This document shows positions 2,085-57,171 of a stretch of DNA of 64,000 nucleotides, one piece after another. The notes beneath the pieces are model-generated. The model was not told where the DNA came from. It saw only the letters and a program-made list of their open reading frames with translations, and made no database searches. Position 1 is the stretch's first letter. Every line of letters starts with the position of its first letter. Both the position numbers and the translations under genes were made by a program. Source of the stretch: Perkinsela sp. CCAP 1560/9 (lineage: Eukaryota > Protista > Euglenozoa: Kinetoplastea); contig CBFFSA010000015.1 of the NCBI GenBank assembly GCA_965644495.1, positions 1-64,000 on the forward strand, read 5' to 3'.

Positions 2085-2371
2085 ATAATATATATATATT
2101 ATAATAATATATATATTGAGGGAGATACGGAGTATCTAACTCGCTTACTAAGGTTAATTCCAAAACTTGAAAATGCCCCTCAAAGAAGCGAGAGATCCAG
2201 TTTTTTCAAAATTTTAAAACGTAGCAGTAGCTCACTAGATGAACTCTTTAATACTCGAAAAATCATCTACAACGACCTCATTTCCCAAATTGTAGAACAC
2301 TTTTGGTAAAAAAAAGTGCGTCTGCAAAGGTCTGCGATACGACAAACTGGTTGACTAAGGAGAGTCCTTTG

Positions 2372-2440
2372 AGTACTCCAGTTGGTAAAGAGGTTCCATT
2401 TTGACGCTGGATGTCCGCGGTTCGGTTCCCAGCATCGACA
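2372..2440 (+). other. Degenerate tRNA-like (Pol III A/B box) segment inside element H
   Basis: CTCCAGTTGGTAAAGAG D-arm/A box, TCCA-TTTTGACGC-TGGA anticodon arm, GGTTCGGTTCCC B box; ends ATCGACA like the SINE-A head; no good acceptor stem. Confidence 0.45.
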
Positions 2441-2604
2441 TTTTAGAACAAAAAAATTTATATGCTCAAAATCGCGAAAAAAACAAATTCGGAACGATTT
2501 TTTTTTTCAGATTTTTTTTTCTTGAAAAAAGTGGCCAGCTGGCCACCAAAAACACGGTTTGCATTTTGTATATATATAGAGAGAAAAATAATGTGCAGGT
2601 CCGA

Positions 2605-3300
2605 GTGGTACAGTGTAGCTACAGTGGACCTTGAGAGAGTGAGAGCAGTGCCATGTGAGGCAGTGATTGCACAGTGATGCAGTGCAGCTGCAGTGGCACG
2701 TGCCAGAGTAAGTGCACTGCCATGTGAGGCAGTGACTGCAGTGATGCAGTGTAGCTGCAGTAGCACGTGAGAGAGTGAGAGTACTGCCACGTGAGGCAGT
2801 GACTGCATCGGCACTGTACCTACAGTGGCACGTGATAGAGTGAGAGCAGTGCCCCGTGAGGCAGTGATGCAGTGTAGCTGCAGTGGCACGTGCCAGAGTA
2901 AGAGTAGTGCCACGTGAGGCAGTGACTGCAGTGTAGCTGCAGTAGCACGTGAGAGAGTGAGAGTACTGCCACGTAAGGTAGTGACTGCATCGGCACTGTA
3001 CCTACAGTGGCACGTAAGAGAGTGAGAGCAGTGCCCCGTGAGGCAGTGATGCAGTGTAGCTGCAGTGGCACGTGCGAGAGTAAGAGTAGTGCCACGTGAG
3101 GCAGTGACTGCAGTGTAGCTGCAGTAGCACGTGAGAGAGTGAGAGGCAATGCCACGTGAGGCAGTGACTACAGTGATGCAGTGCAGCTGCAGTAGCACGT
3201 GAGAGAGTGAGAGTACTGCCACGTAAGGTAGTGACTGCATCGGCACTGTACTTACAGTGGCACGTAAGAGAGTCAGAGCACTGCCACGTGGGGCAGTGAC
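2605..3300. repeat. Complex minisatellite of CAGTG/CACGTG/GAGAGT subunits (~55-65 bp units)
   Basis: Repeated GCAGTGTAGCTGCAGTRGCACGTG...GAGAGTGAGAG; the overlapping ORFs are repetitive translations. Confidence 0.9.
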
Positions 3301-3344
3301 TCACGTTGAGTGAGTCCACTGAGTGAGTCCCACGGGGGTGGGAG

Positions 3345-3566
3345 AGTGTTGTGGAAGAGTGGCCAGCTGGCCATGTTGTGGGAGTGACCATGTTTTGGAA
3401 GTGGCCATGTTGTGGAAGTGACCATGTTTTGGAAGTGGCCAATTTGTGGAAGGGTGGCCAGCTGGCCATGTTGTGGAAGGGTGGCCAGCTGGCCATGTTG
3501 TGGAAGGGTGGCCAGCTGGCCACCAAAAACACGGTTTGTGCTTCGTCGAAAAGTGGCCAGCTGGCC
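3345..3566. repeat. Tandem 18-27 bp repeats containing the palindrome TGGCCAGCTGGCCA
   Basis: GTGGCCAGCTGGCCATGTTGTGGAAGG repeated; 31-bp GTGGCCAGCTGGCCACCAAAAACACGGTTTG at both 2531-2561 and 3508-3538. Confidence 0.9.
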
Positions 3567-3574
3567 TTTCTGTT

Positions 3575-4852
3575 CCTGGGAAACCCGTGATGTGCCTAGT
3601 CAACCTATGCCCGCAGAGGCGACTAGTGAATGGTACGCTAATGATTGAAGATGAAATCATTGTAAAGAACGAGAAGACCAAAGAAGAATTAAGCTCATAC
3701 ATTAAAGAAAATGGAAGGCCTGGTAAAATTTTGGATTGCACAGCCTTCTCAATAGCTGGCATCTCGTCCTCAACAGTAGACGGAAATCTTTCGGCTGAAT
3801 TTCGAAAAAGTGATATTGATGATGAGCTTGAAATTGGGTGCGGCTTCTCTTACACCATTCACAAAGTACAGGGAGCTACTCTTACAGAAAATGTCTGCAT
3901 AGACTTGAACCGCAGACCAACATGCTATCACAGCAAGATGTTATGTCATGCCTCGGTGTACGTGGCCCTCTCAAGAGTAAAAAGTGTGAGTCAACTTTGG
4001 TTACTCCCTGAAAGAAGTGATGGAGGCTTTAGCTACTTGGAAAACTTGCGACCCAACGCCGACGTTTCGAAATTCGTGAAACGTATGACGCAGAAGGAAG
4101 GCAATGAAAAATACGTACCTGAAAAAACTCTGTACCGTTGCCCTCCGCCATCTAAGAAAAAGAAACTGCAAAGAAAGGGGGAATACCCTATGTCGCGCGA
4201 AAGTGAAACTTACACGCGACCCCAGTTAAAAGATCGGACGCAAGACAATCAGTGGACACAACCTGGACAATTTATACCGGACACAGTTATAAACACTTTA
4301 GGTTCAGTACTTTCAAGCCCGTCTGAAAGATATCAAGTATTGGATAGTTCTGTGGCAACTACGATTTTTAAGAGATATGCCACATCAGTAGGGGATTTAC
4401 CGGCAGAAATAAGAACAAGAATTTTCTTGGCTGACCGCACTGCCGTTCCATTCTTTTTCAATCAACACTTCGCTCTATGTGTTATCGTACCGCATGAAAA
4501 TAAAGAAGGCGGAAAGTTACTTTGGTTCGATTCCCTGCCTAACCACAATCCGAGGAGAAGAACTGAAGTGCTCTTAGATGTGCAAACTGTTGCGCAAAAT
4601 ATCTTTCACGGAGCACATGGCTGGGAGATTATACAGGGCTCAACCTTGGTGCAAGATGATGGCACCAATGACTGTGCTTTATTCGTTTGCCGTTGGATGA
4701 TTCAGTGCGCAACTCCAGGTCTCGAAACACCTCCTGAACTGTCTCGTACGGAACTTGCTCAGATCGTCAGCCGGGAATCGGTAGAAGCGGTATGGGCAAA
4801 AGAGCGAAGAACAAGAAATACAGTGGAACAAGAAATGTACAGTGGAAAATAG
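3575..4852 (+). pseudogene. 5'-truncated PIF1-like SF1B helicase C-terminus fused to a Ulp1/C48-like cysteine protease (RepHel remnant)
   Basis: PVMCLVNL..LVNGT, FSYTIHKVQGATL and VYVALSRVKS helicase motifs; QHFALCVI, LWFDSL and QDDGTNDCALFVC give the His-Asp-Gln-Cys pattern of C48; ORF N-terminus is just the tandem repeat. Confidence 0.8.
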
Positions 4853-4922
4853 AAAAGAAATTAGAGTAAATTGATACGAAAATCACATTCATTTTGAATA
4901 CCTTCTTCGTGAGAAGAGGGTC

Positions 4923-4992
4923 CTCAGACAATTATCTCTCGCCTTGACGTGGCGTCTGAGCTTAATGCCTGTTGGCTAACCAAGCAGAGATA
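4923..4992 (+). ncRNA. Candidate HDV-like self-cleaving ribozyme
   Basis: P1 CTCAGAC(4923-29)/GTCTGAG(4954-60); P2 TATCTCTC(4933-40)/GcAGAGATA(4984-92); P3 GCC/GGC; L3 TTGACGT; P1.1 G4946-C4961; P4 with GCC-TGTT-GGC; J4/2 ACCAA. Confidence 0.65.
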
Positions 4993-5201
4993 CATAAAGA
5001 ACTGTCAACGAACGAAATGTTCCGTATGCACGGCCTGGTGTAAGTGTTGGGGGAACCTCGGTTCCGTCTCACTGAGCCAGTGGACGTGCCTATAGGTGCA
5101 CTTTTGCATTATTAAAGTACAACATAAAGGGCTCAATGCTTAACATAAACAAGACGTAAGTAGAATCGAACATAGACCTCCCAGAGGCAAAATGTTAGCC
5201 G

Positions 5202-5421
5202 GGCGGGCCCCTCAAAAAAAAGATTTCAGAAGCTTGCTTTCTTCAAGATTACCTGCCACGAGGTAAAGCACTCCCCGCGCCAGCGGGTCTGCACCGCCTC
5301 GAAGGGCCCTCCCGGCGGGCCCTTCAAAAAAAAGATTTCAGAAGCTTGTTTCCTTCAAGATTACTTGTCACGAGGTAAAGCACCACCCGCGCCAGCGGGT
5401 CTGCGCCTCGAACGGCCCGCC
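5202..5421. repeat. Two tandem ~112-bp copies of a structured GC-clamped module
   Basis: GGCGGGCCC(C/T)TCAAAAAAAAGATTTCAGAAGCTTG... at 5202 and 5314; each copy closed by GGGCC/GGCCC inverted ends. Confidence 0.85.
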
Positions 5422-5424
5422 GTA

Positions 5425-5631
5425 TAACCCAGATTGAAAGGGGCGAGGGAGATACGAAGCAACAGGCGTGGCAGATTCCCACTGAAAAGAAATGGTATCT
5501 CCCGCACGAAGTTTGCCTCCGAGCTAGAAAGCACAAAGGCTTTTCTCGTGCGGGGAGATACCATTTCTTTTCAGTGGGAATCTGCCACGCCTGTTGCTTC
5601 GTATCTCCCTCGCCCCTTTCAATCTGGGTTA
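5425..5631. repeat. Long near-perfect palindrome (~85-bp arms, 36-nt loop), 3' terminus of element H
   Basis: 5425-5509 is the reverse complement of 5546-5631 with one extra G. Confidence 0.95.
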
Positions 5632-5651
5632 ATATAATAGAACTCTTGACT

Positions 5652-6420
5652 CCGCGCACCACCACAGACCCGCTGTCTTCGCAGCCGACCGACTTCATGA
5701 CAGACAGAGCGCCAGAGCATGGGTCCGCCGATACACCGAAAAGGAGCTGATAGCTGAGTATCGCCGCCGCGCTCCCGTCGCCGCTAAATGGTTTAGTGAG
5801 GAGACAGATGCTGAGTTAGCTGAGGATTTTGCGCGAGCTCTGCACAATATACATGGAAAAGAACTCTCTCGGTTTACTTCGATCTTCGTCAGCTAACTCA
5901 CGTGCATGGTGGAATGTGCATGGGGAAATATTGTGTCGGTATGTGTAACGGCCTCTTACAAGGCCGTTATACACACCGACACAATATGATTCTGAAGGTC
6001 CTACTAGACACGCTTCGAAGTTGTGGCCACATACGAGAAATGTATTTTGATCTACCTGGCAACCCCTCCGAGGAGCACCCACCATCATGGCTAGCAAACT
6101 TTAGCACGCTACGACCAGATGGGTGGATTCTCATAGAACATGGCTCAGAAAACATCATTGAACTCACCTCCCCGTGGGAAGAAAATTTTGATAAAGCCCG
6201 CGAACGAAAGTGCGCAAAGTACGAGGAAATTTTGCGCTACCGACAGGCAACAAACGTACGCACGAGCCTCATAACATTTGAGGTCGGAGCTCGGGGCAAA
6301 CTTAGCGATAGTACGCTCGGTCTTTCCTGGGTATTCCCGAAAGATCATAAATACCACGTTCGCTTTTGTCATCGTAGAGGTGATGAAGAATACCAGTGAC
6401 GCCGAATGAGGATCGAATAC
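5652..6420 (+). mobile_element. 5'-truncated RLE-type (HERO/NeSL/R2-like) non-LTR retrotransposon fragment
   Basis: YTHRHNMIL, LRPD, IIELTSPWEEN, KYEEI and FEVGARG restriction-like endonuclease motifs; flanked by 10-bp direct repeat ACTCTTGACT (5642-5651, 6421-6430). Confidence 0.8.
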
Positions 6421-6464: not shown

Positions 6465-7655
6465 TTATTGGCTCGAAGAACTGGTATAGAAGATTTTGTT
6501 TGATGCCTCCAAAACGCTATCCGTTATTGAATATATCATTTGAATCCAATTGCGCCATGCAGTAGTGCTGTGCTTTTTTATGTTTGCAATTATGTACTGA
6601 TCACAAGGTTGGAACACATGAGTCATTTTCGCCGGGATATCTACGACACTGCAATTGTGATCTTGAAGAAGTTTTCGTACATCTCCATGTTGTTTGGCTT
6701 GGTCAATAATCAAAAGAGCTGTGGCGTGGATTTCCCCAATCTCCATTCGGATCTCCTTAAGATTACCTTGAAACCATTGAACCCATTTCTCAAAGGTCGT
6801 TGCGTCTTGAAAATGAGAAGAAGTCCGATGATCTTGCAAAATACGGTTGTCAAGCTCAGGAACTTTGGCGTGGACTGCATTGGTTGCACCTTTCCAGATA
6901 AATTGAGCACCATGAATTTTTCCATCACCAGAAACCAGGACGCTGCACGTGAACCCAAGACGTGAGGACCCTATTTGAATAGGCTTTCCTTTTTTTGCAC
7001 GTATCCATGTCCATCGATGGTTCTTCTCATCTAGATGACAAAAAAATTCATCCATATTGAACAGCTCGGGTTTCACAGTGCAGTGCTTTTGAAGATCATC
7101 TAAGAAGTTTTTTCCAGCATTTTTTTCCTCGGATGCTGTCACGCGTCGGTGCGACGTTGCAGCTCGAAAATTGAAACCATTAGAACGCAGAAACGAACTA
7201 GCCCACGAATCACTTACAATGAAAGGGCCACCATTCTCAGGCAAAACACTGGGGCGCATTTTGTCAATAAGACCGCGTGCAATGGAGGACACAAACGGAG
7301 CGTCTATAGCCTTGCTTTGGCCATTATAGCAAGTAATAGCTGTCAAAAGCTCCTCCTTCTCAGAGTCTGTAAGTAGAAACGGTCTTCCACGCTGTACGGT
7401 GGGATCTCGGTCCCGAAGAGAAAACACGGTGGTCATGGTCATTCGTTTCTCATGGGTTGAATTCCAGATGCGCACAGCATCTGATACTGTAGAATATTTG
7501 CAAAGAGAGTGAAACTTTTCCAATTCTTCCTTGCTCCACACCTTGCGACGCTTTAGATTGCCTTCTTTTCTTTCGCCATAGTCGTCCAACGCACGTTTGG
7601 GGGCACCGCTTACTGTGGTAGTCTCCAAGGACAACTGGTCGTATTCTCGAGACAT
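6465..7655 (-). pseudogene. pogo/Tigger-like transposase (CENP-B-type HTH plus DDE_1), C-terminally disrupted
   Basis: SDSWASSFLRSNGF HTH region; FNMDE, LLIIDQAKQH and THVFQPCD catalytic motifs. Confidence 0.85.
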
Positions 7656-7682: not shown

Positions 7683-9040
7683 TTGAGGGAGATACTACTC
7701 CCTCGCTACCGTAGGTTAATTCGTCGTGCCCGATTTGTGGACCGATTTGTGGCCCGATTTCGTGCCCGATATCGTGCCCGATATCGTTTCAGGTGATTTT
7801 TCGAAAAAATTATTTACAAAGACGTATGAATCGAATTTAGTGACAAGATTACTAGTTTTTCAACAATTCCGATGGGTACCCCCTGCCCCCCCTCCCACCA
7901 TGGTGATCATATCAATTTTTGAAATTTTGCAAAACAAAACTAAAAATTTGTGGGTGAAAGTGAAAAAATATATTTTTCCCAAATCAACTCTTAGACCGTT
8001 TTTTGAGAGTTTGGGGCCTGATATACGTGTATACGCTTTGGTTTCATTCGATATTTCTCCACCCTGTTCTGGTAATATACCTACAAAGTCCAAAATTTAC
8101 CTGGAAGTGTGTGACACGCAAGTCTGTAGAGGAAGGAGGAGGCGCAAGGCAAAACGGAAGAAGGCGGAGCCTTCTGTCTCTTTGCCGCGGCGACGACGAC
8201 TTCCTCGCGTGGGAAGCTGTAAGGGATCTTAGGGAGCATGTTCCGATAGCTATGTAATCCAGGGTAAAGTGGACGAGGGAGATACTAAAGGCACCTTTGG
8301 AAAACCACCTCGAAACTGGAACGGTATCCCCCGGTTTGTAGGGCATTCTGATGGTGGAGCATTATGATGATGTAGAGATTTCGTGCCCGATATCGTGCCC
8401 GATATCGTTTCAGGTGAGCTTTCGAAAAAAACGTTTATAAAGACGTATGAATCGAATTCAGTGACAATATTACTAGTTTTTCAAGAATTCAGATGGTTAC
8501 CCCCTGCCCCAACCACGTCCCCACCAGGGTGATCATAGCAATTTTTGAAATTTTCCAAAATAAAAAACTAAAAATTTGTGGGTGAAAGCGATTTTGTTTT
8601 TCCCAAATCAACTCCTAGACCGTTTTTTGAGAGTTTGGGGCCTGATATACCTGTATACGCTTTGGTTTCATTCGATATTTCTCCACCCTGTTCTGGTAAT
8701 ATACCTACAAAGTCCAAAATTTACCTGGAAGTGTGTGACACGCAAGTCTGTAGAGGAAGGAGGAGGCGCAAGGCAAAACGGAAGAAGGCGGAGCCTTCTG
8801 TCTCTTTGCCGCGGCGACGACGACTTCCTCGCGTGGGAAGCTGTAAGGGGTCTTAGGGAGCATGTTCCGATAGCTATGTAATCTAGGGTAAAGTGGACGA
8901 GGAAGATACTAAAGGCACCTTTGGAAAACCACCTCGAAACTGGAACGGTATCCCCCGGTTTGTAGACAATTCTGATGGTGTAAAAGTCAAAAAACATATT
9001 TTTCCCAAATCAACTCCTAGATCGTTTTTTGAGAGTTTAG
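7683..9040 (+). mobile_element. Non-autonomous family F 5' portion with 12-bp subterminal repeats and an internal ~620-bp tandem duplication
   Basis: A^TTGAGGGAGATACTACTCCCTC hairpin start; GTGCCCGATWTC/GTGGCCCGATTT repeats; ~7760-8375 repeated at ~8380-8980. Confidence 0.75.
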
Positions 9041-9541
9041 CCTCCGCATGGCCTCTTAGAGTGAGGCCGCCAGGAATATTTGGATGAGCGGGTTTGAACT
9101 CGCCGTCTGAGCACCATGTGCTTCAAACTTTGAATTCTTGCCATTCCGCCACCTCCGCCCCAAATCCAATCCAAATCATTCCGGATTGCTCCGGATGGTC
9201 ACTGGCAAGCCAGACCCTTCACAGACAGATTTGGAGGTTCCGAGGCCGACGTCCTCTACCAGTTTCCGCTTGCCCAAGGCGGCACCAACGCGCTGTTACC
9301 AACACGCTGCGTCGACGAACTGTACGTCAACACGGCTTACCCAAGAGGCGTAAGCCGGGTAAGGGAGCTGGTTCCCTGACGGGAGGGTCCGGGACGGTCC
9401 TCCGAGTACTGGGCCTAGTCGGTTATCAGCCCAGCCTCTTAGAGTGAGGCCGCCAGGAATATTGCGATGAGCGGGTTTGAACTCGCCGTCTGAGCACCAT
9501 GTGCTTCAAACTTTGAATTCTTGCCACTCCGCCACCTCCAC
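9040..9541 (-). mobile_element. SINE-B full copy (9160-9541) in tandem with a 3'-truncated copy (9040-9159)
   Basis: Reverse-complement match to 1749-2084; (TTGGA)n tail at 9160-9178. Confidence 0.85.
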
Positions 9542-9544
9542 CTC

Positions 9545-10490
9545 ATGGGGACACTGGAAGATGCTCCAATGTTATACGTGTTCGTCATGGAATACGTCGC
9601 TTCACCCTTGTTGTAAGGCATGCTTCGTGCTGTATTAGAGTCTTCTGAGGTACCCTGAAGAGTCTCAGCTACCTTTACGGATGCGCGGCGAGTGGAATCT
9701 ATGTACTCTTGGGCGGTCTTAGAGATCTGCCATTTAAAGAATTCCTGTATCTCACTTACGGTTCGACCACCTTCAGTAAGATGGCAAGCCGTTGTGCGTC
9801 GCAGCGCATGTCCTGTGAAGCTTTCCGCGTCATCCAGGTTAAGATGCGCAGCCATGAACTTCGGTATTCCTCTCATAGATTGTACCCCCATGGGCGCATT
9901 CTTGAATCCATTGGAGATACCAGATTTTTTATTCAACCACATTACGTTACGAAACAGAGGCATAAACTTTTTGTCGATCGTGGTTCTAGATAGATACTTT
10001 CGTAACGCGTCTCCCGGAACAAGAAACTTTGACTGCGTCGTGGAAGATCTGTGCTTTCCTCTAAAGAGACTCACCCACAATCTCTTTATTTCCCCTGAGT
10101 CTGCTTCTGAAATGCACTTCGTTGTTGGAGTTCGTGCTTCACCCATGCGGAGGCCTCCATAGTATCCACTGCAACGAGGGCAATGTTGCGAACGCACTCA
10201 TCATCTTCTCGATTTTCTGAGAAGAGGATTTCCATGTGATGGGCGGTGAATGTTTCAGTTTTTTTGATCGGATCTACATTCTTTTCACCAGCCCTCGAGC
10301 TGGTCGACCACCCTCGGCCAATCTTTTAGAGGTCTGATATCAAACTTAGCGCTGATAACTTTACCTATCATGGAGCATACGCTCCACATAGTTTTGGGTG
10401 CATAGCTGCGCTCTTCCTTCAGATGCTTTATATACAGACACAGGTCGCCCTCCGTCGGTTGAGGGTCAGCAGATCTAACCAACCAAATAT
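9545..10490 (-). pseudogene. Crypton-like tyrosine recombinase, frameshifted
   Basis: FTGHALRRT (HxxR) and FKWQISKTAQEYID (W...Y nucleophile); N-terminal LCLYIKHLKEERSYAPKTMWS in a separate frame; no linked RT in the same element. Confidence 0.75.
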
Positions 10491-12299: not shown

Positions 12300-15150
12300 T
12301 TACAGACCCTTTAACTGATATTCAAATATCAGTGTCTTTGTAGTTGTTGTTGTTGTTGTTGTTGTGCGTATTTGGCTAGAGGTTACCGATTTAAGTTTGC
12401 GCTGCATTTTGCTGCCATTAGAATCACCATTGGTATGGTTTTTGCGCTTGTCTTCTGCATGAGGAATCTCGCCGTAGAATCTCAAAGCCTTTTCTCCCTT
12501 GCTTATTTTACTAGCCACCCAGTCTGCCATATAATTATGTGGATTCTCGTTATGCGCTTTAACTTTTACGCAGTAGAAGCGCTTTGTCCATCTTAGCGAA
12601 ATATATGTTTCTTGCAATTTCTGAAGTATAGCGCCTCCCTCAAATGATTTAAATCCTATGAATCTGAACCTATGGATAGCTCCATGAAAGAAATCCCAAA
12701 CATACTCAGAATCCGTGTGCAAAATGACATCTCCGTCGTAGGACAATGCGATGAGAAGAGCCTCGTGCGCGGCAAAGGATTCTATTTCCTGAATAGATTG
12801 AGAGAATTCATGAGGAGGTTTTAACCCAAGAGATATAGAGGGCCCGCGGCGGGGCAGACTACCCCACAACCTGTGTGAGTTTCATCCTTTTTAACGATTC
12901 GTGCTCCATCTGTATAAATGTGTGTTTCATTTGGCCCCATTGGAAATGGTTGCCGCCCTTCTTCAATGTATTGTAGGGTTTCGTAGCACCCCTTGTTTAC
13001 CCCCTTTACCAAAAGATTTTCCCATAGTTTTGAAGTTGTTTTAGTGTACGAGTGCCTGGGTTCAAGCTGATTTTGAAGATTTTCAAGTTTCTTGCACCAT
13101 TAAGACCGATTTTGACCAAGTTTTAGAATCTCAGATACGTCAGAATGTAACTCTTTTGCACATCTTTCTGATAGCGATGGCTTGGAACTCTCATCATTCG
13201 TTCTCCATAGTACGGCAGTTACGAATGGAGTAGGGTGACGAATAAGGTGGCCTACTAGCGAGGCACGTTGCAATTGTATCACAGTATTGGGCTTTAGGTC
13301 AGTGGGGTAAAGAGAGTCTACTCTGCAATGCGCCTCTTTCGAGCACTTGACTCCCAACATGACCCTCCTCATTCTGTTCATTTGGACTTCCACTTCATGT
13401 AGCTCTATCTTATTTAAATTCCAAGTCCCTGGATTATAATAGACCACTGATTGAACGAGAGACTTAAAGATGTGTAATTTGCTTTTTGGTGATATAGTAG
13501 AACTCCATATGGCTTTGAGTTTGTGCATTATTGCCCAACCTAATCGTACACTTTCTTGTGAGTTTGAGCTGCGATCCTCCTCGTTCTGAGTGCTACCCAA
13601 GTAGCGATAATATGTAACTTTTGGTATTTTTTTTTGTTTGACTTTTGGTATATCGCCGAGTGTCACTACTTGCAAAGGTCTTCCATCATCCTTAACTTTA
13701 CCTAGTGTCATCCGTGCCGTTTTGTTTGGTCCGACATTTATTTTCAAATTAGCTTTTTCTGCGGAAGTTTTAAGTTTGTGCAACATTGTGCTTAGCTCCT
13801 CCTTGGATTCGGAGAAGAAAACTATATCATCAGCATAATTTATATCAGATACACGCAGTTCCTTTAGGCCTCTGCTCCTAGTTTCTGAGCTATGTGTCAC
13901 AAGCCCTAAGCGATTTATGTCGATAGATTCAACTAAAATACGATCAAGAACCATAATAAGCAGGTATGGGGCCAGAACGTCACCTTGAAGAGTCCCCTGT
14001 AAAAGTGGAAATGAGTCTGTATTACCGTATGGTGTTTTCACGTGCGATTTGAGATTTTGATAAATACACATGACCGTAGAACTGAGATTTTCGGGAATAT
14101 CGAAAGCACGTAATGTCTCTTTTATCGCAGCGAATGATAATGAAGGAAAGGCTTGTTGAAAGTCGACAAAACAGACGAACACCCCAGCCCCTCGGCGTGA
14201 TTTTTCCATTATTTCTAAAAACGTTGCCTGAGCGCCAGCTGTTGAGCGGTTTGGTCGAAAGCCGAATTGATTCCCGCGAAGCAAACTTTCCACTGCTGGT
14301 TGTATTCTGTCTAAAATGATTTGATTCAAAATCTTCACTACATGATTCACAAGACAGATTGGTCTCCAATTTGTGAGTGAGCGCAAGTTACCTTTCTTTG
14401 GCAATGGGACCTGCAATATCGATTCCCAAGATTCATCCGCTTTTCCGGTTTTTCGTACTTCATTCATTATATCCAGGAGAGCATTATGCAAGTCTTGATC
14501 AGCTGAAATAGCACGTAGAGCTTCAACAGGGATATGATCATCGCCTGTAGCTTTTCCTGACTTAATCTTTACCATCGCAGCAGTTAGTTCCTCCACTCCA
14601 AATTCACCATCATCAATTTTTGCCAGTCGTTTTGGTGCAGCAGGTAAACTTATTGCTTCATGACCTTTGTAAGCACTACCCCCTACCATGCTGAAATGAT
14701 TCTTCACTATATTAAGGCTGCTGTTTACCGTAGTTGAAACTAGCGGAAAATCTTGCTTCTTGTCCCCTACAATTTTTCGAATTGTGCTGTACGCGGATTT
14801 TGGAGTTGATTTAAGCTCTTTTTCCATGGCGTCGCACTCATTTATAATAGAGGAGTCTAGCTTTTCAGAGAATTCTTTCCATGCAGTAGCAAACATAGTT
14901 TTATTGCCCACGATCTTCAGCAGAGACTTCATGTCAAATCCGGATAGATCTGTTTCAGCATCAATGCGAATTTCTTTTGCATTACTAGTTTTCTTGGGCA
15001 GACTAGATGCGGTCACTCTAACAGCAGAAGAGAGTTTTGTCCAAGATATTTCGCTGGCCTTATCTATTTCCATTTTTGGCGCGTTTTCGGACTTCTGATC
15101 CTCCGACCGAATTCTTTTTGGCACAATGTTTCTGCAACAGCTAACACATC
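12300..15150 (-). mobile_element. 5'-truncated RTE-like LINE: reverse transcriptase plus RNase H, with stops and frameshifts
   Basis: GKATGDDHIP, PLPKKGN..NWRPICL, QFGFRPNRS, FVDFQQAF, GTLQGDVLAPYL, YADD, YRYLGS; then IYTDGA, LHTDSEYVW and KVKAHNENPHN. Confidence 0.9.
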
Positions 15151-15175
15151 TATCAAAGGTACCTTTGATCAAAAT

Positions 15176-18100
15176 TTGTTCGATGTCTGGTATGATGATA
15201 AAAGCCCTGTGAAAATCATTTGCGGAGATTTAAATGCACCTCTTCTTACAGTACGAGGCTGGAAATGCCGCACTAAGCGGACTAAGGCGCTACGCAGTTT
15301 GTTGCATTCAATGGGCGCCCAGTCTGCACATGAAGGATGCTGTGCGCGGCGCAAGTGGACATATCGCTTTCCAAAGTCCAAAAAATATCCAGAAGGTTTG
15401 ACGAAACAACTAGATCATATAATCGTAAATCGTCGATTTTTCTCGTCGATACGTAAACAAAAGGTTTGCATCCCCCCTATTCCAACCAGACACTGCGTAC
15501 TATCTTCAAACTTTAATTTTCGTTGGAAAGAACAAGAAAAGAAACTACAGCCGCCCTTCTGGTCGGCTGTTGTTTGGTCCCTTCGGCTGTAGTTTGGACC
15601 GTTCTGGTCGGCTTAATGATGACATTAAGAGCAATTTTGCAACCGGAGTTAAGAAAGCCCTGAAACATGCTCCGAAAAGAATACGTTCAACAAACGAAAC
15701 TGAAACTGCAACTACTCCTCATCTTGAAGTCGAAAACATCAAAGTAAGTTGGGAAAAACTAGCCGAAGCAATCCATTCCACCTCAAATACTCTTCCAAAA
15801 AGGCTTCCAAAAAATGCGGACAATGCGGCTATTCGGGAAATTGACCCAGATGTGTTGAACTTAGAATGTTATGAAAGAAGTTGCCAGCAAAAGTGAATTT
15901 AAACATGCGACTAAGATATTTTCTGATCGAATTGAGACATCTATTTTAACTGAGTGTGAAATTTTGGAAAAGGAACTAAAATCGGCGCCTAAATCAGCGT
16001 ATAGAACCATACGAAATATTGTTGGGGATAATAGAAGTGAATTTGCAATATTTGGGAGAACTGCCAAAGAAAGTCTCGAAGCAGTTAGAAATCATTTTTC
16101 GAAAGTCGGACACGAGACAGTGGCTGAAAAAGGCACCATTCGATTTCCAACGGCACCGAAACGATTAGAACAGATTGACGACGGAAAATTTCGCCAATCT
16201 TGGAAGTCCATATTACAGGTACCGCTGCCAAAAAAGGGAAACTTGCAATCACTGGGAAATTGGAGACCAGTATGCCTTGTTAACCATGTGGTTAAAGTGT
16301 TGAACAGAATGATCCTAAACCGCATCCAACCGGCAGTAGAGAAGTCTCTCCGTGGGAACCAATTTGGTTTCCGCCCGAATCGATCTACAGCAGGCGCGCA
16401 GGCAACATTTATGGAGATTGCAAGCAAATCGCACAAAGGAACAGGCGCGTACGCATGTTTCGTAGACTTCAAGCAAGTCTTTCCATCAATATCGTTCGAC
16501 TCCATAAAAGAGGCTCTCCGAGCTTTTGATATACCTCCAAAGCTGAGTGCAGCTGTGATGTCAATTTACAAAAATCTTCGATCTCATGTACGGACCCCTT
16601 ACGGAACAACGGAAGATTTTCCTATTGTAAGCGGCACTCTTCAAGGAGATGTTCTAGCTCCTTACTTATTTGCTATGGTTCTGGACCGAATTTTGGTAGA
16701 GGCTATTGACATGAACAAGCTCGGGCTGGTAACGCACACATCCGGGACAAAAAGTCGAGGACTCAAAGAACTGAGAATTTCTGACATTGATTACGCTGAT
16801 GATATTGTATTGTTTGCTTCAACGAAACCTGAATTAAAAATCATGCTTACCAATTTATGTGCTTCAGCAGAAAAGGCAAACCTTAAAATCAATGTTGGTG
16901 CACAGAAAACGGCTTGGATGACACTTGGAAAGGTAAAGGATGATAATACCGCCCTAGAAATAGACGGATTAGGGGAAATTCCTAGAGTAAAAAAGTACAG
17001 ATATCTTGGCAGCACACAGAACACCGAGGATACCTGTACGTCCCCCAAGGAAAGACTGCGACTAGGATGGGGTGTAATGCACAAGCTTCGCGCCATATGG
17101 AAGTCCTCTATCTCCTCTCATTGCAAATTTCAAATTTTCAAAACACTCGTTCAATCCGTCGTGTACTACAACCCTGGCACATGGAATGTCAATCAGGCAG
17201 AACTTCACGATATTCAAGTTCAAGTAAATAGAATGCGCAGAATTGTATTTGGCGTAAAAAATGCTTGTGACTCTCGTCTCAGAACGGAATCGCTTTATCC
17301 TACTGACTTAAAACCTGAAACAGTAATTAAGACACAGAGAGATTCCTTAATAGGGCATCTTGTGCGCCATCCTACACCGTTTACTACAGCAGTACTATGG
17401 AGAATAAATGATGAGGCCTCTAAACCAACATTGTCCGAACGGTGTGCCCACGAACTACACTCTGATGTTACTGAAATCCTACAACTTGGACAAGATCGCC
17501 CCACATGGCGGAAGAAACTGGAAAAACTACAGGTGGAGCTGGAACCACAACCTTCTTACACAAAGTCTTGTTCTCCTGCTTGGGAAAAAAGTATTAAAAA
17601 GATATTGGAAAACAAGGACTATCAAACTCTACAGTACGTGGAAGAAAGTAGCAGGTGCATCGGTATCGGCTCATTGGGTTCCACTCATTCAAAGGGTGCG
17701 AAGCAATGCGATCCCTTCAAAACGCTTACTACAGTACAAAACATACTAAAAAATTCTACTGTATCAAGGTCAAACCACACAATGAAAATATGTACAACGA
17801 TACCGCAGATTATTGCGGTGGTTGTAAAACTACCGCTCTACACTCGATTATTGAAAAAAAAGTGAACACAAACAGTGAAAATATAAAGAGGAACACAGTA
17901 ATATAATAGAAGAAAAAAATATAAAAGGGGGCTCCGGTGGTCCAAAACTGAAAAAAAATTTTGAAAAAAATGGGGGGCCCATGGGGGGGGTCCAGGGGGG
18001 AGGTCCAGGGGGGGGGCATGAGCGGAGGGGGCGGAGTAATCCGTGGCGTACGCTACGTAGAATTTGCCGTTTGTACAGGGAAACTCTTTGCATCCAGACC

Positions 18101-19410
18101 TCGTCGACAAGGGAAACTCTTAACATTGTTAAAGATTTCTTTGGGGGGGGCATGGTCGAGCAAATTTTTTCGAAAAAATTAGTTTTCGAAAAAAAACCGC
18201 AGAAAGGGTAGCCGGGGTCTTGGCGCGCATTTTCCACCCCCCTACCCGGGGGTGACCCCCCCGCGTATCCGCAGGACGGGTCCGCCAATTTCGGATTTTT
18301 CGGAAAAAATTTTTTGAAAAAAAATTCAACTTGGCGAAAAAAATGACAAAAAAAATATTTTTCCAAAATGGTTTCCCCTATTGTATTTTGATAGTTTGGG
18401 ACCTACACTAGCTTTCTCCGCAGTTGTTTTCGCAAGGTATCCCTTCTTCAAACTGTGGTGCGCCCCTCAAAATGACCCACTTTTGACTAAAAATGGTGAA
18501 AAAGTATTTTTCGGACCTAAAGGGGCATTTTTGTGTCGAAAGAATGGTATGGTTGGAGTCGTATTCTCTACCCAATACGTTCGGTAGGCTTTCATTCATG
18601 CCTGCGAGTGATTTCCCACGCGCAAATGTCGGATTTAGTGCTCTGAGAGCAAAAATATGCGAAAATGACCCCATTTTTACCCGAAATTCGGCTATTTTTG
18701 GCTATAATCTTTCCGTTTTCCAGGCTAAATTTTCTTTTTTAGGCTCTTCGTTAAACGCGGCGGTAGTTTTCAACGCGAAGCGCGCAGCATGAGTGACTTC
18801 TAAGTTGAAAACAACCACCGCGTTTAACGAAGAGCCTAAAAAAGAAAATTTAGCCAAAAAGGCGTGCAAGCTGGAAGGAAATGAACTAGCTATAAAATAC
18901 TACGGGGATATATTGCACGGCAATGCAAAGAGGAAATCAGAGCAAAATAATACCTCAATATGTCTTAAAACTCAGAGAACTAGAAAAGGCACAAACCAAA
19001 GAACAGTGCCTGTATCTACGGGGCCCCCTTTGTCGGAAAACTCACACGATTCACGTTCAACGAAACAACCCAAACGGAGCATTCGAATAAATGAAAAGAG
19101 GACGAAATCTCCCATACGCAAAGCTTCTTTACATAAGAAGACAAAGGGTATCAACTTAATTTCCAGCCCCCCACAGATAACCAATTCGAACGTAAGCATT
19201 TAGGTGAAACGAAATAAACCGCAAATGAAGCGTCTAAAAGATACAAGTTTGGACTTATCATCATCCCAGACAAAGAGTGAACCAGAAAACGAAAAGGAGT
19301 CACAAAAGCGAGTGAAAAGGACATCAAAGAAAAAACCTTGTTTTACAGCTAAAGGGAAAGACAAGAGTATAATTGATGTAAAAAAGCATGGAAATAAGCG
19401 GGAGAATTAG
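15176..19410 (+). mobile_element. Second RTE-like LINE copy (APE C-terminus, RT, deleted RNase H, basic tail), interrupted by element E
   Basis: ICGDLNA, WTY and QLDHI (APE); GTLQGDVLAPYLF and YADD (RT); RNase H end NDTADY|LAKKAC split by E at 17813-18848. Confidence 0.9.
17813..18848 (+). mobile_element. Non-autonomous Helitron2-like element E, complete, with a ~120-bp internal LINE fragment
   Basis: 5' TTGCGGTGGTTGTAAAACTACCGC hairpin; 3' ~120-bp palindrome containing ACAACCACCGC; removal restores the host LINE frame with no duplication. Confidence 0.8.
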
Positions 19411-20095: not shown

Positions 20096-20355
20096 TAAGA
20101 CCGACTTAAAGTCGGTTGAAAAACATAACACTTTCACCTTGAAAGTGAATACCTCAAGGTATTCCAAGTTTAGAAAGATGCAATTCCATCAATTCTTTCC
20201 TTACATGGACGGTTTCCTATTACGTCCAGTTCTCGCAACCTTACCTCGAAGCACACTCCATGCCTCAGCTTCGCGCTTGAATGCAGGAATGTCTCGCGCT
20301 AGATCATTTCCAAGGGATTTCCTTTTGAGTAAGGCATTTAAGGACCTTTTGCCAA

Positions 20356-20475
20356 TTTTTCTTTTTTAGGCTCTTCGTTAAACGCGGTGATAGTTTTCAA
20401 CGCGAAGCGCGCAGCATGAGTGACTTCTAAGTTGAAAACAACCACTACGTTTAACGAAGAGCCTAAAAAAGAAAA
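20356..20475 (+). repeat. Solo copy of the E terminal palindrome
   Basis: TTTTCTTTTTTAGGCTCTTCGTTAAACG...CGTTTAACGAAGAGCCTAAAAAAGAAAA with no adjoining E body. Confidence 0.9.
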
Positions 20476-20779
20476 TATTCCATTTATTTCCAATGTGTGC
20501 CCTTACTTTGCACAAGTGTATGGTATAAGAATTAAAGGTGAAAGTCAAACATTATTTCACAAATTTTTTTTTGTTGATGTTCTCATTTGACCATATTTTA
20601 CTTACAAAATGTTTTTTAGGATATTTTTCGCATATTTCTGCACTATTCTCGATGGATTGCCCGTTTTACCACAATTTCCAATGTACAGACAGTATTAGCT
20701 ATATGATATTGTCTAGTGGTTGAAAGGCCACAAATTTGTTTTCCAGAGCGTCATCTTTAGCAAGCGGCATGAAACTCTC

Positions 20780-21554: not shown

Positions 21555-21973
21555 GAGCGGTGCGGGCGTAGTTATTAGACGGTGGTCCTTACAACCTGCA
21601 GGTTGTTGGTTCGATTCCCGCTATCGACAAAACTCGCAACCTGGCGGCCTCACTTCAAAGGGAGAGCGATCAGGAGTGCCTTCAATGCCCACACCCAACA
21701 CCGCTCCACTGGAGGACCGACCCGGGACCGCCGAGCTGAACCAGGCTCCAGCGCAGCCGCTAAAATGCGAGCTGACTATGCAAAGGAGGCTTGAGACACA
21801 GCCTACACGATGCAACGGGGTGGACGCCCGTACTGGTAGCTACGGTTGGGTAGCCGTGCTCGGGCCGCAAGGCGTCGAGTGCCGTCTGGGAAGGGGGTAG
21901 CAAGACAATGACCTGAGACTCTACCCTAACGGTTGGCGATGCAGAGCCCTCCGTGTCTTCTTCTTCTTCTTCT
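21555..21973 (+). mobile_element. SINE-A copy
   Basis: Matches 1271-1690 with a short (TTC)n tail. Confidence 0.85.
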
Positions 21974-21974
21974 T

Positions 21975-23752
21975 TATTCCATTGTATCCCACTACACGCC
22001 GTTTATGGCGCAAATTGTGAAAAAACTCCCAGACATAATTCGAATCAGTGTGAAATAAACAAACGCAAGATTTTTCAGGTAATTTACCCAGAGCCAAATA
22101 AAAAGATTGAAGTTCTGCTCTCTCAATTGTCGTAACTTCTAGCGGTATTGAGCATCTAATTGGTTCTTTTTTCGGAGGTATGATCACAATCCCTGCACCA
22201 CTGCGAATTTCTTGAGATTGTATCATACTCTTTATAGAACCGTCAGTATATATTTGCATAGCTTTTAAAGTGGGGAAGGTTTCTTCTGATTCTTCAATAA
22301 ATTGAAAATCATGTAGGTCCTTAAGCTTTTTCGCTTTCGAAAATGCTGTTTTCCATTTTGGTGTCCCAGATTTTACGTAACTTATAGATGGTTCCAAGTT
22401 TTCCAGAAGTTGCTCTGTAAGTTTAAACCAATGCTCGCGGTCCGTGGCATAGATTAACGCCTGCTCTATTGTAATGCCCATATCTTTAATGCAAGCCTCG
22501 CTTGGAGAAGGTAATCTCGCATTACTACGTGCTTTCCACTGAATTAATTCGCGGAAGTAGGAGGAATGACGAATCATATGCCCCATGAGTTTTGCCCGTT
22601 GTACCTTATGTGTTGTAGAAAACTTTGCAGTATTAATATTGAGGGAGGCGTTGGGATAACAAACACCATATTCATCAACTTTGTTCGAGCGGGAAATAAT
22701 TCTTCGCATCGTGTTCACCTCAATATCAATTTTACGAAGCAACTTTTGTGAAATATGAAGTGCCCCCATACCAAAATTCAAAACTGGGTAAACTAAGGCG
22801 TTGTAAAGGCGAAGCTAAGTAAGGGCGGAGGTGGCGGAGTGGGCGGAGGTGGCGGAGTGGCAAGAATTCAAAGTTTGAAGCACATGGTGCTCAGATGGCG
22901 AGTTCAAACCCGCTCATCGCAATATTCCTGGCGGCCTCACTCTAAGAGGCTGGGCTGAGAACCGACTAGGCCCAGTACTCGGAGGACCGTCCCGGACCCT
23001 CCCCTCAGGGAACCAGCTCCTTTACCCGGCTTACACCTCTTGGGCAAGCCGTGTTGACGTACAATTCGTCGACGCAGCGTGTTGGCAACATCACGTTGGT
23101 GCCGCCTTGGACAAGCGGAAACTGGTAGAGGACGTCGGCCTCGGAACCTCCAAATCTGTCTGTGAAGGGTCTGTCTTGCCAGTGACCATCCGGAGCAATC
23201 CGGAGTGATTTGGATTGGATTTGGAAAGACGAAGCTTCATTTCAGCAGTAAGGGGAGAAGACAATATTCCATTCAAACGATGAAGTGACCCCCATGCAAG
23301 TTTTAAGCGACCCTTTACTGTAGAAGAAAAATCTTGGTCTTGTCGTTGCCCTAGATACCTATATGAATGCACTTTCGGTACTTCCAAGTTGCCGTTAATG
23401 ATGGTGTTGTTGTCGGAACGCGTAACTTTACCAAAAGACATCCAAGCTGTTTTGGATTGACCAACCGCAAGTCGTAGATTAGCTTTCTCTGCTTCTCGAG
23501 AAATGCTGGTTATCATTTTTTGCAACCTTTCTCGCGAATCACTGAAGAGTGCTACGTCGTCGGCATAATCGATATCACTTAACCATTTTTCGTGGAGGCC
23601 TCTCTTTCTTGTCCCACTAGAGTTCAGAAGAACGCCGTCCGATCCGTCATCGAGAGCCTTGTTTAGAATCCTGTCCATCACCATAACAAATAAATAGGGA
23701 GCTAGAACATCCCCTTGTAGGATCCCTGTGGTAATTGTGCCCTTCAAATCTC
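21975..23752 (-). mobile_element. Third RTE-like LINE fragment (RT C-half plus RNase H N-half), interrupted by SINE-B
   Basis: GILQGDVLAPYLF, YADD, YRYLG; IYTDGS, ERAELQS, FHTDSNYVWEFF; frame AEMKLRL|YNALVYPV spans the SINE. Confidence 0.85.
22826..23225 (+). mobile_element. SINE-B full copy
   Basis: Duplicated head, (TTGGA)n tail, imperfect 12-bp TSD AAAGGCGAAGCT / AAAGACGAAGCT. Confidence 0.85.
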
Positions 23753-23754
23753 TA

Positions 23755-24658
23755 TTTTCTTTTTTAGGCTCTTCGTTAAACGCGGTGGTTGTTTTCAACT
23801 TAGAAGTCACTCATGCTGCGCGCTTCGCGTTGAAAACTACCGCCGCGTTTAACGAAGAGCCTAAAAAAGAAAATTTAGCCTGGAAAACGGAAAGATTATA
23901 GCCAAAAATTGCCGAATTTCGGGTAAAAATGGGGTAATTTTCGCGTATTTTTGCTCTCAGAGCACTAAATCCGACATTTGCGCGTGGGAAATCACTCGTA
24001 GGCATGAATGAAAGCCTACCGAACGTATTGGGTAGAGAATACGACTCCAACCATACCATTCTTTCGACACAAAAATGCCCCTTTAGGTCCGAAAAATACT
24101 TTTTCACCTTTTTTAGTCAAAAATGGGTCATTTTGGGGTGCGCACCACAGTTCGAAGAAGTGATACCTTGCGAAAACAACTGCGTAGAAAGCTAGTGTAG
24201 GCCCCAAACAATCAATATACAATAGGGGAAACGATTTTGGAATAATATTTTTTTTGTCATTTTTTTCGCCAAGTTGAAATTTTTTTCAAAAAAAATTTTC
24301 TGAAAAAATTCGAACTTGGCGGACCCGTCCTGCGGATACGCGGGGGGGTCACCCCCGGGTAGGGGGGTGGAAAATGCGCGCCAAGACCCCGGCTACCCTT
24401 TCTGCGGTTTTTTTTCGAAAACTAATTTTTTCGAAAAAATTTGCTCGACCATGCCCCCCCCCCTGGACCTCCCCCCTGGACCCCCCCCATGGACCCACCA
24501 TTTTTTTCAATTTTTTTTTTCAGTTTTGGACCACCGGAGCCCCCTTTTATATTTTTTTCTTCTATTATATTACTGTGTTCCCCTTTATATTTTCACTGTT
24601 TTTGTTCACTTTTTTTTCAATAATCGAGTGTAGAGCGGTAGTTTTACAACCACCGCAA
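23755..24658 (-). mobile_element. Element E, complete (second near-identical copy at 29082-29985)
   Basis: Both termini present; flanked by A and T on the element strand. Confidence 0.8.
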
Positions 24659-24661
24659 TCT

Positions 24662-48882: not shown

Positions 48883-50596
48883 CTATGCAAAAAGGCATGA
48901 TTCGTGTTTGTGGCTGATGCTCGAAATGTGATCTCGAGTTTTCAAGATAGGACGTTGTCCTTGCATACCCGCAAAAAAGGAGCACGCTTCACATATGGTA
49001 TGGTCCCCGCGCCCATGTTCGAAAACATGTTTGCGCATGCAGTCGTACATAACCGTGTACGACGAAGGGTATAAATCCCGTGATTCTGCACATTTCGTGC
49101 ACCGAAAGCCTGCAGACATGGTACCTTGCACCTCAAGGTCCATCCACATGTCGTACAGCTCCTTCTCGGTCTTGTGATTCGCACTCGAGAGATGCTCTCG
49201 AGTACGTCTTTTTTTTTTTAGTTGCATAGAGAAATCTTTGCCATAGTCGCTCTGACCGCCACCCGGTGTCCGACCAGCAGGCTTTTCTTGGTCGGATGAA
49301 CCAGCCACCTTCCAGTGGCAAGATACGTGACTCGCATCACGTACCTCAGGGGAGACACCGCATTACAGGGTAGTGCTGGACTTGCTAGGTGTGGCTCTGT
49401 CAATTACGAGAAGTCCTATTCCTACCGCTCGCCCGCTAAAACTCTACGGCCCCGGAATGTTAGTCCGGGAAGGTCCTGGCTGGAGAAATGAAGGCTTTTA
49501 CACCTCCACTCCTCCGGAGATGGGGTGGGATAAAACCATAGCTAGCACCAATGCCGTTCCATCTCCACCAGGGGGGCAAGGTTAACGCGCCCTCTAGCGT
49601 CATGTATGCCTCGGCGACGGATCTTGCCACGCCGTCTTTGCCCCGGAACGCGGTTAACGACGCCGCGAACAAGGGGGAACAGGAATAAGAGTGGAAAGCT
49701 CCCTCCTGCTAGCTCGGGGTCCTTACTTCGGAAGGCTGGGGTCGCCACGCCCCATCACCGACAACGGTCCAATTCCGGGTTCCTGACCTTATCTTCCCCT
49801 CTTGAGATGTTCAGGGTTTTGCTCGACCTGTGTTGTGGCACATTTCGTGCACCGAAAGCCATTGACAATGTCACCTTCAATTTGAAGGTTTTTCCACGCG
49901 TCAAAAATCTCTTTTTCACGCTTGTGGTCCACGCACTAGCCGTGATACTGTACGCTCAATCCGGGAAGTTTTCCCATGAGCTCTTGAAAAAAGGGACAAG
50001 GTTCACAAATGGCGTGTAGTCCTTTCGAGTGTTCCATTATGTGCCGCTTCATCAGGGGAACTGTCAGTTCCACCCGAATATTCGCTTTTGCACACTCGTT
50101 GCAGGTGTATAATTCACCTTCTTCAGCAGCACAATGTTGCCATTGCTCGTAAATCTGAGCTTCGCGTTTGTGCTTCTTGCTAGGCGGAGGTGGCGGAGTG
50201 GCAAGAATTCAAAGTTTGAAGCACGTGGTGCTCAGACGGCGAGTTAAAACCCGCTCATCGCATTATTCCTGGCGGCCTCACTCTAAGAGGCTGGGCTGAG
50301 AACCGACTAGGCCCTGTACTTGGAGGGCCGTCCCGGACCCCCCTCATGGAACCAGCTCCCTTACCCGGTTCACACCTCTTGGCGTCAACACCATTGCAAT
50401 GGGGATGATCGCCGCGCCCATGTTCGAAATTTGAAGGTTTTTCCACGCGTCAAAAATCTCTTTTTCACGCTTGTGGTTCACGCACTGGTCGTGATACTGT
50501 ACTTTTTCACCACGCTTGTGGTTCACGCACTGGTCGTGATACTGTACGCTCAATACGGGAAGTTTTCCCATGAGCTCTTGAAAAAAGGAACAAGGT
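48883..50596 (-). pseudogene. Fragmented coding remnant with repeated CxxC..H..H zinc-finger-like modules
   Basis: GFRCTKC..MRKHVFEH..HTICEAC (48883-49220) and YTCNEC..MKRHIMEH..HAICEPC..GFRCTKC (49830-50180); partial duplicate at 50410-50596. Confidence 0.5.
50183..50390 (+). mobile_element. SINE-B 5' half, diverged
   Basis: Head and core match the other SINE-B copies. Confidence 0.8.
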
Positions 50597-57107: not shown

Positions 57108-57171
57108 AAGATTGCGACGGGTATAGGGAAGGGGTGTTTGCGAATTGTAAAAAAAATTATAAAAAATTAGA

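Follow-up and report, generated by a model that had tools for sequence, protein, structure and literature searches.

Helitron2-type elements with long 3' terminal palindromes and loops in both orientations in a kinetoplastid-like protist

Judged by its sequence, the element H, at positions 2116-5632 of the 64,000-nucleotide stretch of DNA analyzed here (the window), is a rolling-circle transposon of the Helitron2 group (HLE2); it is a 3.5-kb version, with an internal deletion, of an 11.1-kb element found on contig C5. Three families, H, F, and E, carry 3' palindromes of ~130-207 bp with an 11-bp subterminal repeat on each arm, and the asymmetric loop of the palindrome is found in both orientations. 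We give a probability of roughly two in three to the reading that H is an HLE2 deletion derivative, that F and E are sister families, and that the palindrome is copied and occasionally rearranged. The features of the window are as follows.

2116-2137, plus strand: 5' terminus of H, with TT at 2116, the GAGGGAGATAC repeat at 2118-2128, and a weak 6-bp hairpin at 2123-2137
2603-3538, plus strand: internal satellites of H, a ~65-bp unit repeated 10 times, then 17- and 27-bp units
3590-4852, plus strand: remnant of the RepHel open reading frame (ORF) in H, left by an internal deletion of ~7.5 kb
~3605-4140, plus strand: PIF1 helicase C terminus in H, 97% identical to the C5 copy
~4410-4715, plus strand: SENP/Ulp1 (C48)-like protease in H, with a weak E value and aligned catalytic residues
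5199-5421, plus strand: two 112-bp repeats in H
5425-5631, no strand: 3' terminal palindrome of H, with perfect 79-bp arms (5425-5503 and 5553-5631) and a 49-nt asymmetric center
5445-5455 (plus strand) and 5601-5611 (minus strand): repeats in the H palindrome, with partial inner copies near 5495-5505 and 5553-5561
7683-8980, plus strand: F copy with an internal duplication, H's 11-bp repeat, and a different palindrome
17813-18851, plus strand: E, a noncoding element, with TT at 17813 and the GCGGTGGTTGT repeat at 17815-17825 in a 9-bp hairpin
~18723-18855: 3' palindrome of E, with the repeat complement at 18811-18821, some 29 nt short of its end
20351-20476, no strand: stand-alone E palindrome, with neither an element body nor a target duplication
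23754-24659, minus strand: E copy inside a reverse-transcriptase gene, with ~20 target codons apparently missing on the palindrome side
54699-55743, plus strand: tandem E, in which one E 3' end abuts the 5' TT of the next at 54821/54822

The preliminary description had recognized a PIF1-type helicase C terminus in H, which we confirm, and the same ORF additionally encodes the SENP/C48-like protease. It had also proposed a Helitron2 identity, and a member that has both ends of H and carries Rep and DUF6570 does exist. H is assigned to HLE2 because this element on C5, which carries Rep, DUF6570, and PIF1, has H's ends. The full elements on C5, C1, and C8 were mapped via their coordinates, and the transposase-bearing copies with H and F ends are these.

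C5, 11,095 bp, minus strand: full element, with the 5' motif at 676688-676700 and the palindrome at 665605-665810
C5, minus strand, in coding order: DUF6570 at 672511-672915, Rep at 671454-672137, PIF1 at 668297-668800
C1, 2626.8-2632.7 kb: F-ended RepHel

Between its own H ends, the C5 copy carries Rep (Helitron_like_N) and the PIF1 helicase in an ORF that is in pieces. DUF6570, described as a marker of HLE2 (PMC11417382), is matched in C5 with an E value of 2e-16 and at C1:2632320 with an E value of 5e-20. In this assembly the RepHel ORFs of both the H and the F type are disrupted; intact RepHel ORFs are found on C8 (2975 aa) and C4 (2257 aa), with 27-38% identity to H, and no autonomous partner for E was found in this genome. 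The HUH/Y2 catalytic motifs are present in the three closest full-length relatives. In a helicase tree built without curated HLE1 or HLE2 references, H and F group with DUF6570-bearing RepHels, apart from cellular PIF1. A host PIF1 gene was rejected. When other species were searched for closer helicases of the H type, the only matches were near-identical proteins, probably from the same organism. The genome holds ~15 Rep loci and hundreds of young nonautonomous copies, on contigs shared with prokinetoplastid-like host genes. Logan short-read contigs (four runs, one study) confirm the H element and several deletion joints. The 112-bp repeats differ in copy number among elements, and related repeats are present in the C8/C4 RepHel family.

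H has inverted repeats and terminates in TT-GAGG on one side and CTGGGT(T) on the other, and HLE1, which has 5' TC, 3' CTRR, and no inverted repeats, was rejected accordingly. The 5' end of H sits inside a TA-rich tract, and three other loci (L029, L032, and L039) begin at the identical start. The exact complement of GAGGGAGATAC lies at 5601-5611, 20 nt from the end of H, with an additional sense copy at 5445-5455; across the window the motif is matched 11 times, where 0.7 matches would be expected. The terminal layout previously described for H and E, a 5' motif with its complement near the end of a palindrome, was borne out by exact 11-bp matches, as was the claim that sequence-distinct families follow one rule; the 11-bp subterminal inverted repeats are exact in H, F, and E and fall within the 11-17-nt range of HLE2. 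H and F, which had been treated as one end type, do have the 11-bp repeat and the layout in common, but their palindromes differ in sequence. Likewise, the small 5' hairpin is significant in E (z = -4.0) but weak in H and F (z = -1.6), and the 85-bp arms attributed to H correspond to ~85 pairs in the folded form, the perfect arms being 79 bp. A correctly oriented exact 5' motif was found within 12 kb of 14 of the 22 palindromes checked, which supports the joint inheritance of motif and palindrome.

The folded H palindrome has a predicted energy of -120.8 kcal/mol (z = -26), and its loop in the window is in the "flip" orientation. The arms of the E palindrome are ~45-53 bp long with 3 mismatches (z = -13.6). 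The F copy at 7683-8980 is truncated within the loop, which is inverted; complete F palindromes are found at L021, L036, and L044. In all three families the left arm starts at the mirror image of the terminus, and each family's palindrome contains that family's own 5' repeat. The H body is attached at the same junction in 18 of 20 independent H palindromes among the loci examined. Stand-alone H palindromes occur in an array on C2, the flanks of which are confirmed in short-read contigs, and at L028. The joint between E copies at 54821/54822 is either a head-to-tail junction or a self-insertion.

Insertions lie in an AT-rich A-T-T context. Of 26 distinct flanks, 23 have an A before the 5' TT, and 16 of 17 H ends are followed by a T; none of 11 complete copies shows a target duplication. 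Empty sites were found neither for the loci examined nor, genome-wide, for the C2 stand-alone palindrome; a T^T boundary (AT^T) fits as well as an A^T boundary (A^TT). Among the joints listed in the Logan contigs, which lose rare forms, none is a 3'-to-5' circular joint.

In the single assembly from which the loop-orientation data come, H loops divide 11 to 7 (P = 0.48 against even), and both flip and flop forms are present within three deletion lineages, whereas E loops divide 212 to at most 9 (96% one way); the two families differ at P = 3e-5. Flop loci include C70:21351, C1:1377527, C11:645193, and C5:665605. Orientation in F follows body lineage (7/1 versus 0/8; P = 0.0014). Across the 11-copy C2 array, orientation is uniform. 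In E and F, then, the orientation of the loop is for the most part handed down, and for this reason an AAV-like inversion in every cycle is not supported, although H taken alone is compatible with rerandomization. Symmetric arm mutations were seen twice against 0.07 expected. The arm variant at position 56 remains on the terminal arm in one flip and one flop copy, while other arm variants move together with the loop; this pattern, with few sites and possible homoplasy, points to breakpoints that vary and not to one constant nick site. Fold-back products are rare (L036, L020, C7:520990/521070, and C1:2211917/2212148), and host replication can make them. Loops at hairpins are also known to invert where no transposase is involved (PMC12928735). 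These data are better accounted for if a large hairpin now and then provokes template switching or recombination.

Helraiser, whose 3' hairpin acts as a terminator (PMC4778049), is the model for the transposition steps that we propose. By analogy with its biochemistry, RepHel supplied in trans would bind the 11-bp repeat and nick the 5' end, and one strand would be displaced, end-joined, and reinserted. On the displaced single strand the 3' palindrome would fold into an oversized stop signal and might also offer the repeat as duplex. The terminator role given here to the H palindrome is borrowed from a Helitron1 element. The palindrome would be copied as part of the element, and, being so stable, it would from time to time cause templates to switch or recombination to occur, either at the host fork or in the course of transposition. 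Such events could invert the loop, equalize the arms, extend the fold-back into body or flank, or leave a palindrome alone. Both arms of H and F carry a perfect repeat, and inverted copies would therefore remain mobile; in E, a repeat with 2 mismatches becomes the terminal one upon inversion, which may explain why inverted copies are rare.

In a different mechanism, rolling-hairpin transposition, the displaced strand would fold at the 3' palindrome and self-prime, RepHel would nick the boundary between body and left arm, and, as with parvovirus Rep and the AAV ITR, the loop would invert during transposition and stand-alone palindromes would be released. The near-even division of H loops and their occurrence in both forms in three lineages speak for it, as do the mirror-image start of the left arm, the repeats on both arms, and the existence of body-palindrome-body fold-backs and stand-alone palindromes; FLIP/FLOP is a signature of AAV replication (PMC7671332). 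We nevertheless consider it unlikely, given the predominance of one orientation in E, the inheritance of orientation with lineage in F, the variable breakpoints suggested by the position-56 variant (few sites, possible homoplasy), and the ordinary short ends of the closest metagenomic relative with readable ends (L054-L057). If it were true of H and F, flip/flop ends and mobilizable palindrome-only mini-elements would follow, as would a mechanistic link between Helitrons and linear single-stranded DNA viruses.

Alternatively, the HLE2 elements may be genuine and the two loop orientations artifacts of assembly or polishing, as long palindromes sequence poorly and short-read contigs are unable to phase arms longer than k. 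This seems quite improbable, because random error would not make orientation track F lineage, differ by family, and stay uniform in the C2 array. A separate origin of the palindromes, either as foldback or MITE-like elements in their own right or as tail-to-tail fusions of two 3' ends, with later attachment to ordinary HLE2 bodies and movement or inversion by themselves, is very improbable. Stand-alone palindromes of H (C2 array, L028) and E (20351-20476) could be read in this way, but target duplication was found at none of them, most H palindromes sit on an H body at one junction, and the palindrome of each family holds that family's 5' repeat. A MITE or foldback element with terminal inverted repeats was rejected for the same reasons, and independent MITEs with target duplications of their own, the outcome that the preliminary description had set against itself, are not what the stand-alone copies represent, because they lack such duplications.

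What is new here is the loop in both orientations, the fold-back extensions, and the stand-alone palindromes, in what looks like a Helitron2-type element of a kinetoplastid-like protist. A single gene makes the host look prokinetoplastid, whereas searches with CDC20 and Vps4 gave no host assignment. By the account of two papers, Helitrons are absent from kinetoplastids or trypanosomatids; in a survey of 57 genomes, those of trypanosomatids were discounted as false positives (PMC12278014). We found no report of long 3' palindromes or flip/flop in Helitrons in a literature collection with few subscription papers or Repbase reports, and no biochemical tests of how HLE2 ends work. Detection tools assume short repeats and stem-loops, and such elements would therefore be filed as MITEs or foldback elements. 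An asymmetric loop within a long palindrome provides a built-in marker of whether a 3' end has been copied or hairpin resolved.

Like HLE2/Helitron2 elements (Bao and Jurka; Li et al. 2024, PMC11417382), H, F, and E have asymmetric inverted repeats of the 11-12-bp class, and the group as a whole shows the DUF6570-Rep-PIF1 transposase and nonautonomous deletion derivatives. The resemblance extends especially to FoHeli1/2 of Fusarium oxysporum (PMC5148889), with one hairpin-borne repeat at the 5' end and another 20-30 nt short of the 3' end, a T at each boundary, and an NAT^T-compatible target. Unlike in HLE2, the 3' hairpin arms are 45-85 bp long, reach the terminus, and contain two copies of the repeat, both orientations of the loop are found, and the host is apparently a kinetoplastid; a stem-loop that is itself a palindrome of ~130-207 bp enclosing the repeat departs from the usually tiny HLE2 end hairpin. 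Helentron, HINE, and DINE-1 elements (Thomas et al. 2014, PMC4067079) likewise have subterminal repeats, a nested 5' inverted repeat, central tandem repeats, which the internal satellites of H resemble in nonautonomous Helentrons, and T-rich ends. A common repeat of 11 bp or more defines a Helentron family, and H and F share one. However, the 3' palindrome of published Helentrons measures 5-10 bp and is placed downstream of the repeat, unlike in H, F, and E, and H has a C48-like protease instead of an AP endonuclease after the helicase. A search of that region for an endonuclease domain gave no match, the C48/SENP-like protease occupying it, and Helentron proper was rejected for H.

JGI metagenome contigs (L054-L057) and a locus of Diplonema papillatum (GCA_030068145.1; L058) belong to the same helicase clade as H. 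In the former, a 12-bp repeat sits 16 nt short of a TT end, and an 11-bp hairpin lies immediately upstream; in the latter, a hairpin with 34-bp arms comes after a 26-bp repeat. Unlike H, F, and E, neither has the repeat on both arms of a terminal palindrome. Giant palindromes were found in none of the metagenomic relatives L051-L064, whose short-read contigs can break at such structures. Ends like those of L054 are a plausible starting point for a single fold-back extension. Finally, H, F, and E share with the parvovirus/AAV ITR a predicted HUH nuclease and a helicase, a terminal palindrome of 130-200 nt, FLIP/FLOP isomers, and candidate binding sites inside the palindrome. The H-type helicase is PIF1 (SF1) and that of parvoviruses is SF3. 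Unlike AAV, these elements have a palindrome at one end only and no capsid, and in E and F the orientation of the loop is mostly inherited.

H, F and E make up a real, young, multi-family Helitron2-group (HLE2) rolling-circle transposon system whose 3' end is unusual and whose palindrome loop has inverted repeatedly. The 21-Mb genome (110 contigs) holds about 40 scored copies of the H palindrome and 113 occurrences of the exact H/F 5' motif, and the Rep-bearing member sought in the preliminary description lies on contig C5.

2116 to about 5631: window copy of H, with 5' TT plus the 11-mer GAGGGAGATAC and a 3' palindrome
C5, 676700 to 665605, minus strand: H-ended element of 11,095 bp, by match coordinates

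By these coordinates the C5 element runs from the 5' motif (676700) through DUF6570, Helitron_like_N, PIF1 and the helicase C terminus to the H palindrome (665605), and its helicase tail is 97% identical to that of the window copy. Since the C5 element combines H ends, Rep, PIF1 and this match, the window copy is an internal deletion derivative. It has kept its satellites, the tail of the helicase and a putative SENP/C48-like protease, which aligns with SENP1 at the His, Asp, Gln and Cys residues, with an E of only 0.09. An F-ended RepHel (Rep plus helicase transposase) on C1 is 49-63% identical to H, and a third RepHel family, whose ORFs are intact (2975 and 2257 aa), just 27-38%; these full-length elements, like that on C5, are mapped by match coordinates. 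The nearest full-length public relatives have DUF6570, Rep and PIF1, in many cases together with UCH, and show HUH and YxxKY motifs, and H and F cluster with DUF6570-bearing full-length relatives, apart from cellular PIF1. According to HELIANO, DUF6570 is specific to HLE2 (PMC11417382). Two metagenomic contigs of about 14.5 kb (L062 and L063; ENA ERZ27251832, ERZ27251494) each have a single 4537-aa PIF1/UCH ORF; because their ends overlap they look circular or tandem, possibly an HLE2-like replicon that is free or arrayed. Another family, starting TGGAGGGAGATAC (window 56640-57250; loci L048-L050), has an RRM-like ORF with about 68% similarity to that downstream of the intact C8/C4 RepHel, followed near 57185-57250 by an AT-rich palindrome with 16-bp arms.

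H and E share one end plan in distinct sequences, as had been described, each with an 11-mer at the 5' end and its complement near the palindrome end. In H, a 49-nt centre separates perfect 79-bp arms (folding gives about 85 pairs, z -26); the 11-mer recurs on the left arm at 5445, and the right arm bears its complement 20 nt before the end. E repeats this layout with a different 11-mer and a palindrome of about 130 bp with three arm mismatches. Motif matches in the window number 11 for H (0.7 expected by chance) and 23 for E (0.8 expected). The proposed 5' hairpin reaches significance in E but not in H/F, and the joining of H and F as one family holds for their common 11-mer but not for the palindrome, which in F is its own (complete in loci L021, L036 and L044, truncated in the window). 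A second E-like subfamily has the same arm and a different loop start (C1:1723886, C2:872475, C11:145936, C12:260967, C18:43980, C36:76673, C69:778; G000).

Motif and palindrome are co-inherited: 14 of the 22 dispersed H palindromes checked have an exact 5' motif in the correct orientation within 12 kb, against a chance level of about 0.07 per palindrome, a genome average above which repeat clustering lifts the true background. Target duplications were absent from every complete copy examined, and a search for an empty site found none. E runs on C2, C8 and C14 have a period near E's own length, and the window holds one head-to-tail E junction. Fold-back products and lone palindromes also occur.

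L036: E-type end, stem reaching about 25 bp into the body, arms equalised
L020: E palindrome, 37 bp of its flank present also as an inverted duplicate
C7:520990/521070 and C1:2211917/2212148: body-palindrome-body structures, deduced from coordinates
C2 array, L028 and window 20351-20476: body-less palindromes

The C2 array has a 2-kb period and palindromes without adjacent body, and its flanks are seen in independent short-read contigs. Independent MITEs had been envisaged, but none of these three sets of lone palindromes is flanked by a target duplication.

Because the palindrome loop is asymmetric, each copy can be scored for the way its loop faces with respect to the body; in this one assembly the 18 H copies with sequence divide 11 to 7. 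Both forms are found inside three distinct deletion lineages and alongside either allele of a loop SNP, a pattern that requires some four separate inversions among copies that are 95-99% alike. By pattern matches, F has both orientations, tracking body lineage (7/1 versus 0/8, p=0.0014), and E has 212 standard loops versus at most 9 inverted. Inversion is commonest in H, with the longest and most perfect arms, and rarest in E, with short, mismatched arms (H versus E, p=3e-5); selection may add to this difference, because inversion spoils the terminal repeat in E alone. Mutations mirrored on both palindrome arms number 2 versus 0.07 expected. Among arm substitutions in H palindromes (L013-L030), 12/34 are C>A and 4/34 G>T, an imbalance that may stem from oxidative damage in the folded state or from sequencing bias.

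The earlier suggestion of a self-priming palindrome, taken in its strong form, amounts to parvovirus-like terminal resolution, which yields FLIP/FLOP ends (PMC7671332); this is possible for H. Such resolution predicts loops re-randomised at every transposition, and the one-sided orientation in E and lineage-bound orientation in F contradict it in those families. Most likely, the elements follow the usual HLE2 cycle, except that their 3' hairpin is oversized; at so stable a hairpin, occasional template switching or recombination would give the inversions, fold-backs and lone palindromes. Plastid stem-loops show the same inversion process without any transposase (PMC12928735).

Other mobile sequences and repeats share the window.

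6465-7655, minus strand: DDE_1 (pogo-like) transposase
51911-52783, plus strand: Merlin/IS1595-like transposase
13100-15172, minus strand, and 15871-17865, plus strand: divergently oriented pair of RTE/ingi-like reverse transcriptases
21921-22781, minus strand: RNase H piece
6050-6330: putative restriction-like endonuclease fragment of a non-LTR retrotransposon, by motifs recognised by eye
5928-5987: hairpin with 27-bp arms
23754-48230: tandem array of about seven copies (>99% alike) of a 3420-bp unit, each with a truncated copy of E and a tRNA-like repeat, plus one larger duplication
1274-1693, 21559-21974 and inverted copies inside the array: dispersed repeat of about 420 bp, with tRNA-like start and TCT microsatellite end, possibly a SINE
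1749-2084, 9160-9545, 22842-23224 and 50182-50382: unclassified non-coding repeat, dispersed, about 380 bp long, its first units GGCGGA-rich, often tandem or nested

Among named relatives, the cellular PIF1 on C3, a contig that also bears H/F ends, finds its best matches in PhF-6, PhM-4 and Perkinsela, with trypanosomatids and Bodo next. The first two belong to the prokinetoplastids (PMC7859406), and this one gene suggests the same placement for the host. In the published view, Helitron transposases are missing from kinetoplastids. One paper judged trypanosomatid Helitrons to be false positives and names Merlin as the sole DNA transposon in kinetoplastids (PMC12278014). Within the open-access literature, the present system appears to be the first kinetoplastid Helitron.

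In Helraiser, circles are intermediates and the 3' hairpin is a terminator (PMC4778049), and by analogy both may play these parts here. FoHeli1/2 are reported to target NAT^T (PMC5148889); the flanks of the present elements fit NAT^T, and equally A^T. A relative on metagenome contigs L054-L057 has ordinary ends with an 11-bp hairpin immediately 5' of the 3' repeat, a layout that a single fold-back copy of the last 45-85 nt would convert into an H/E-type end. The relative in Diplonema papillatum has, downstream of the repeat, a hairpin with 34-bp arms, which suggests that long 3' stems recur within the clade.
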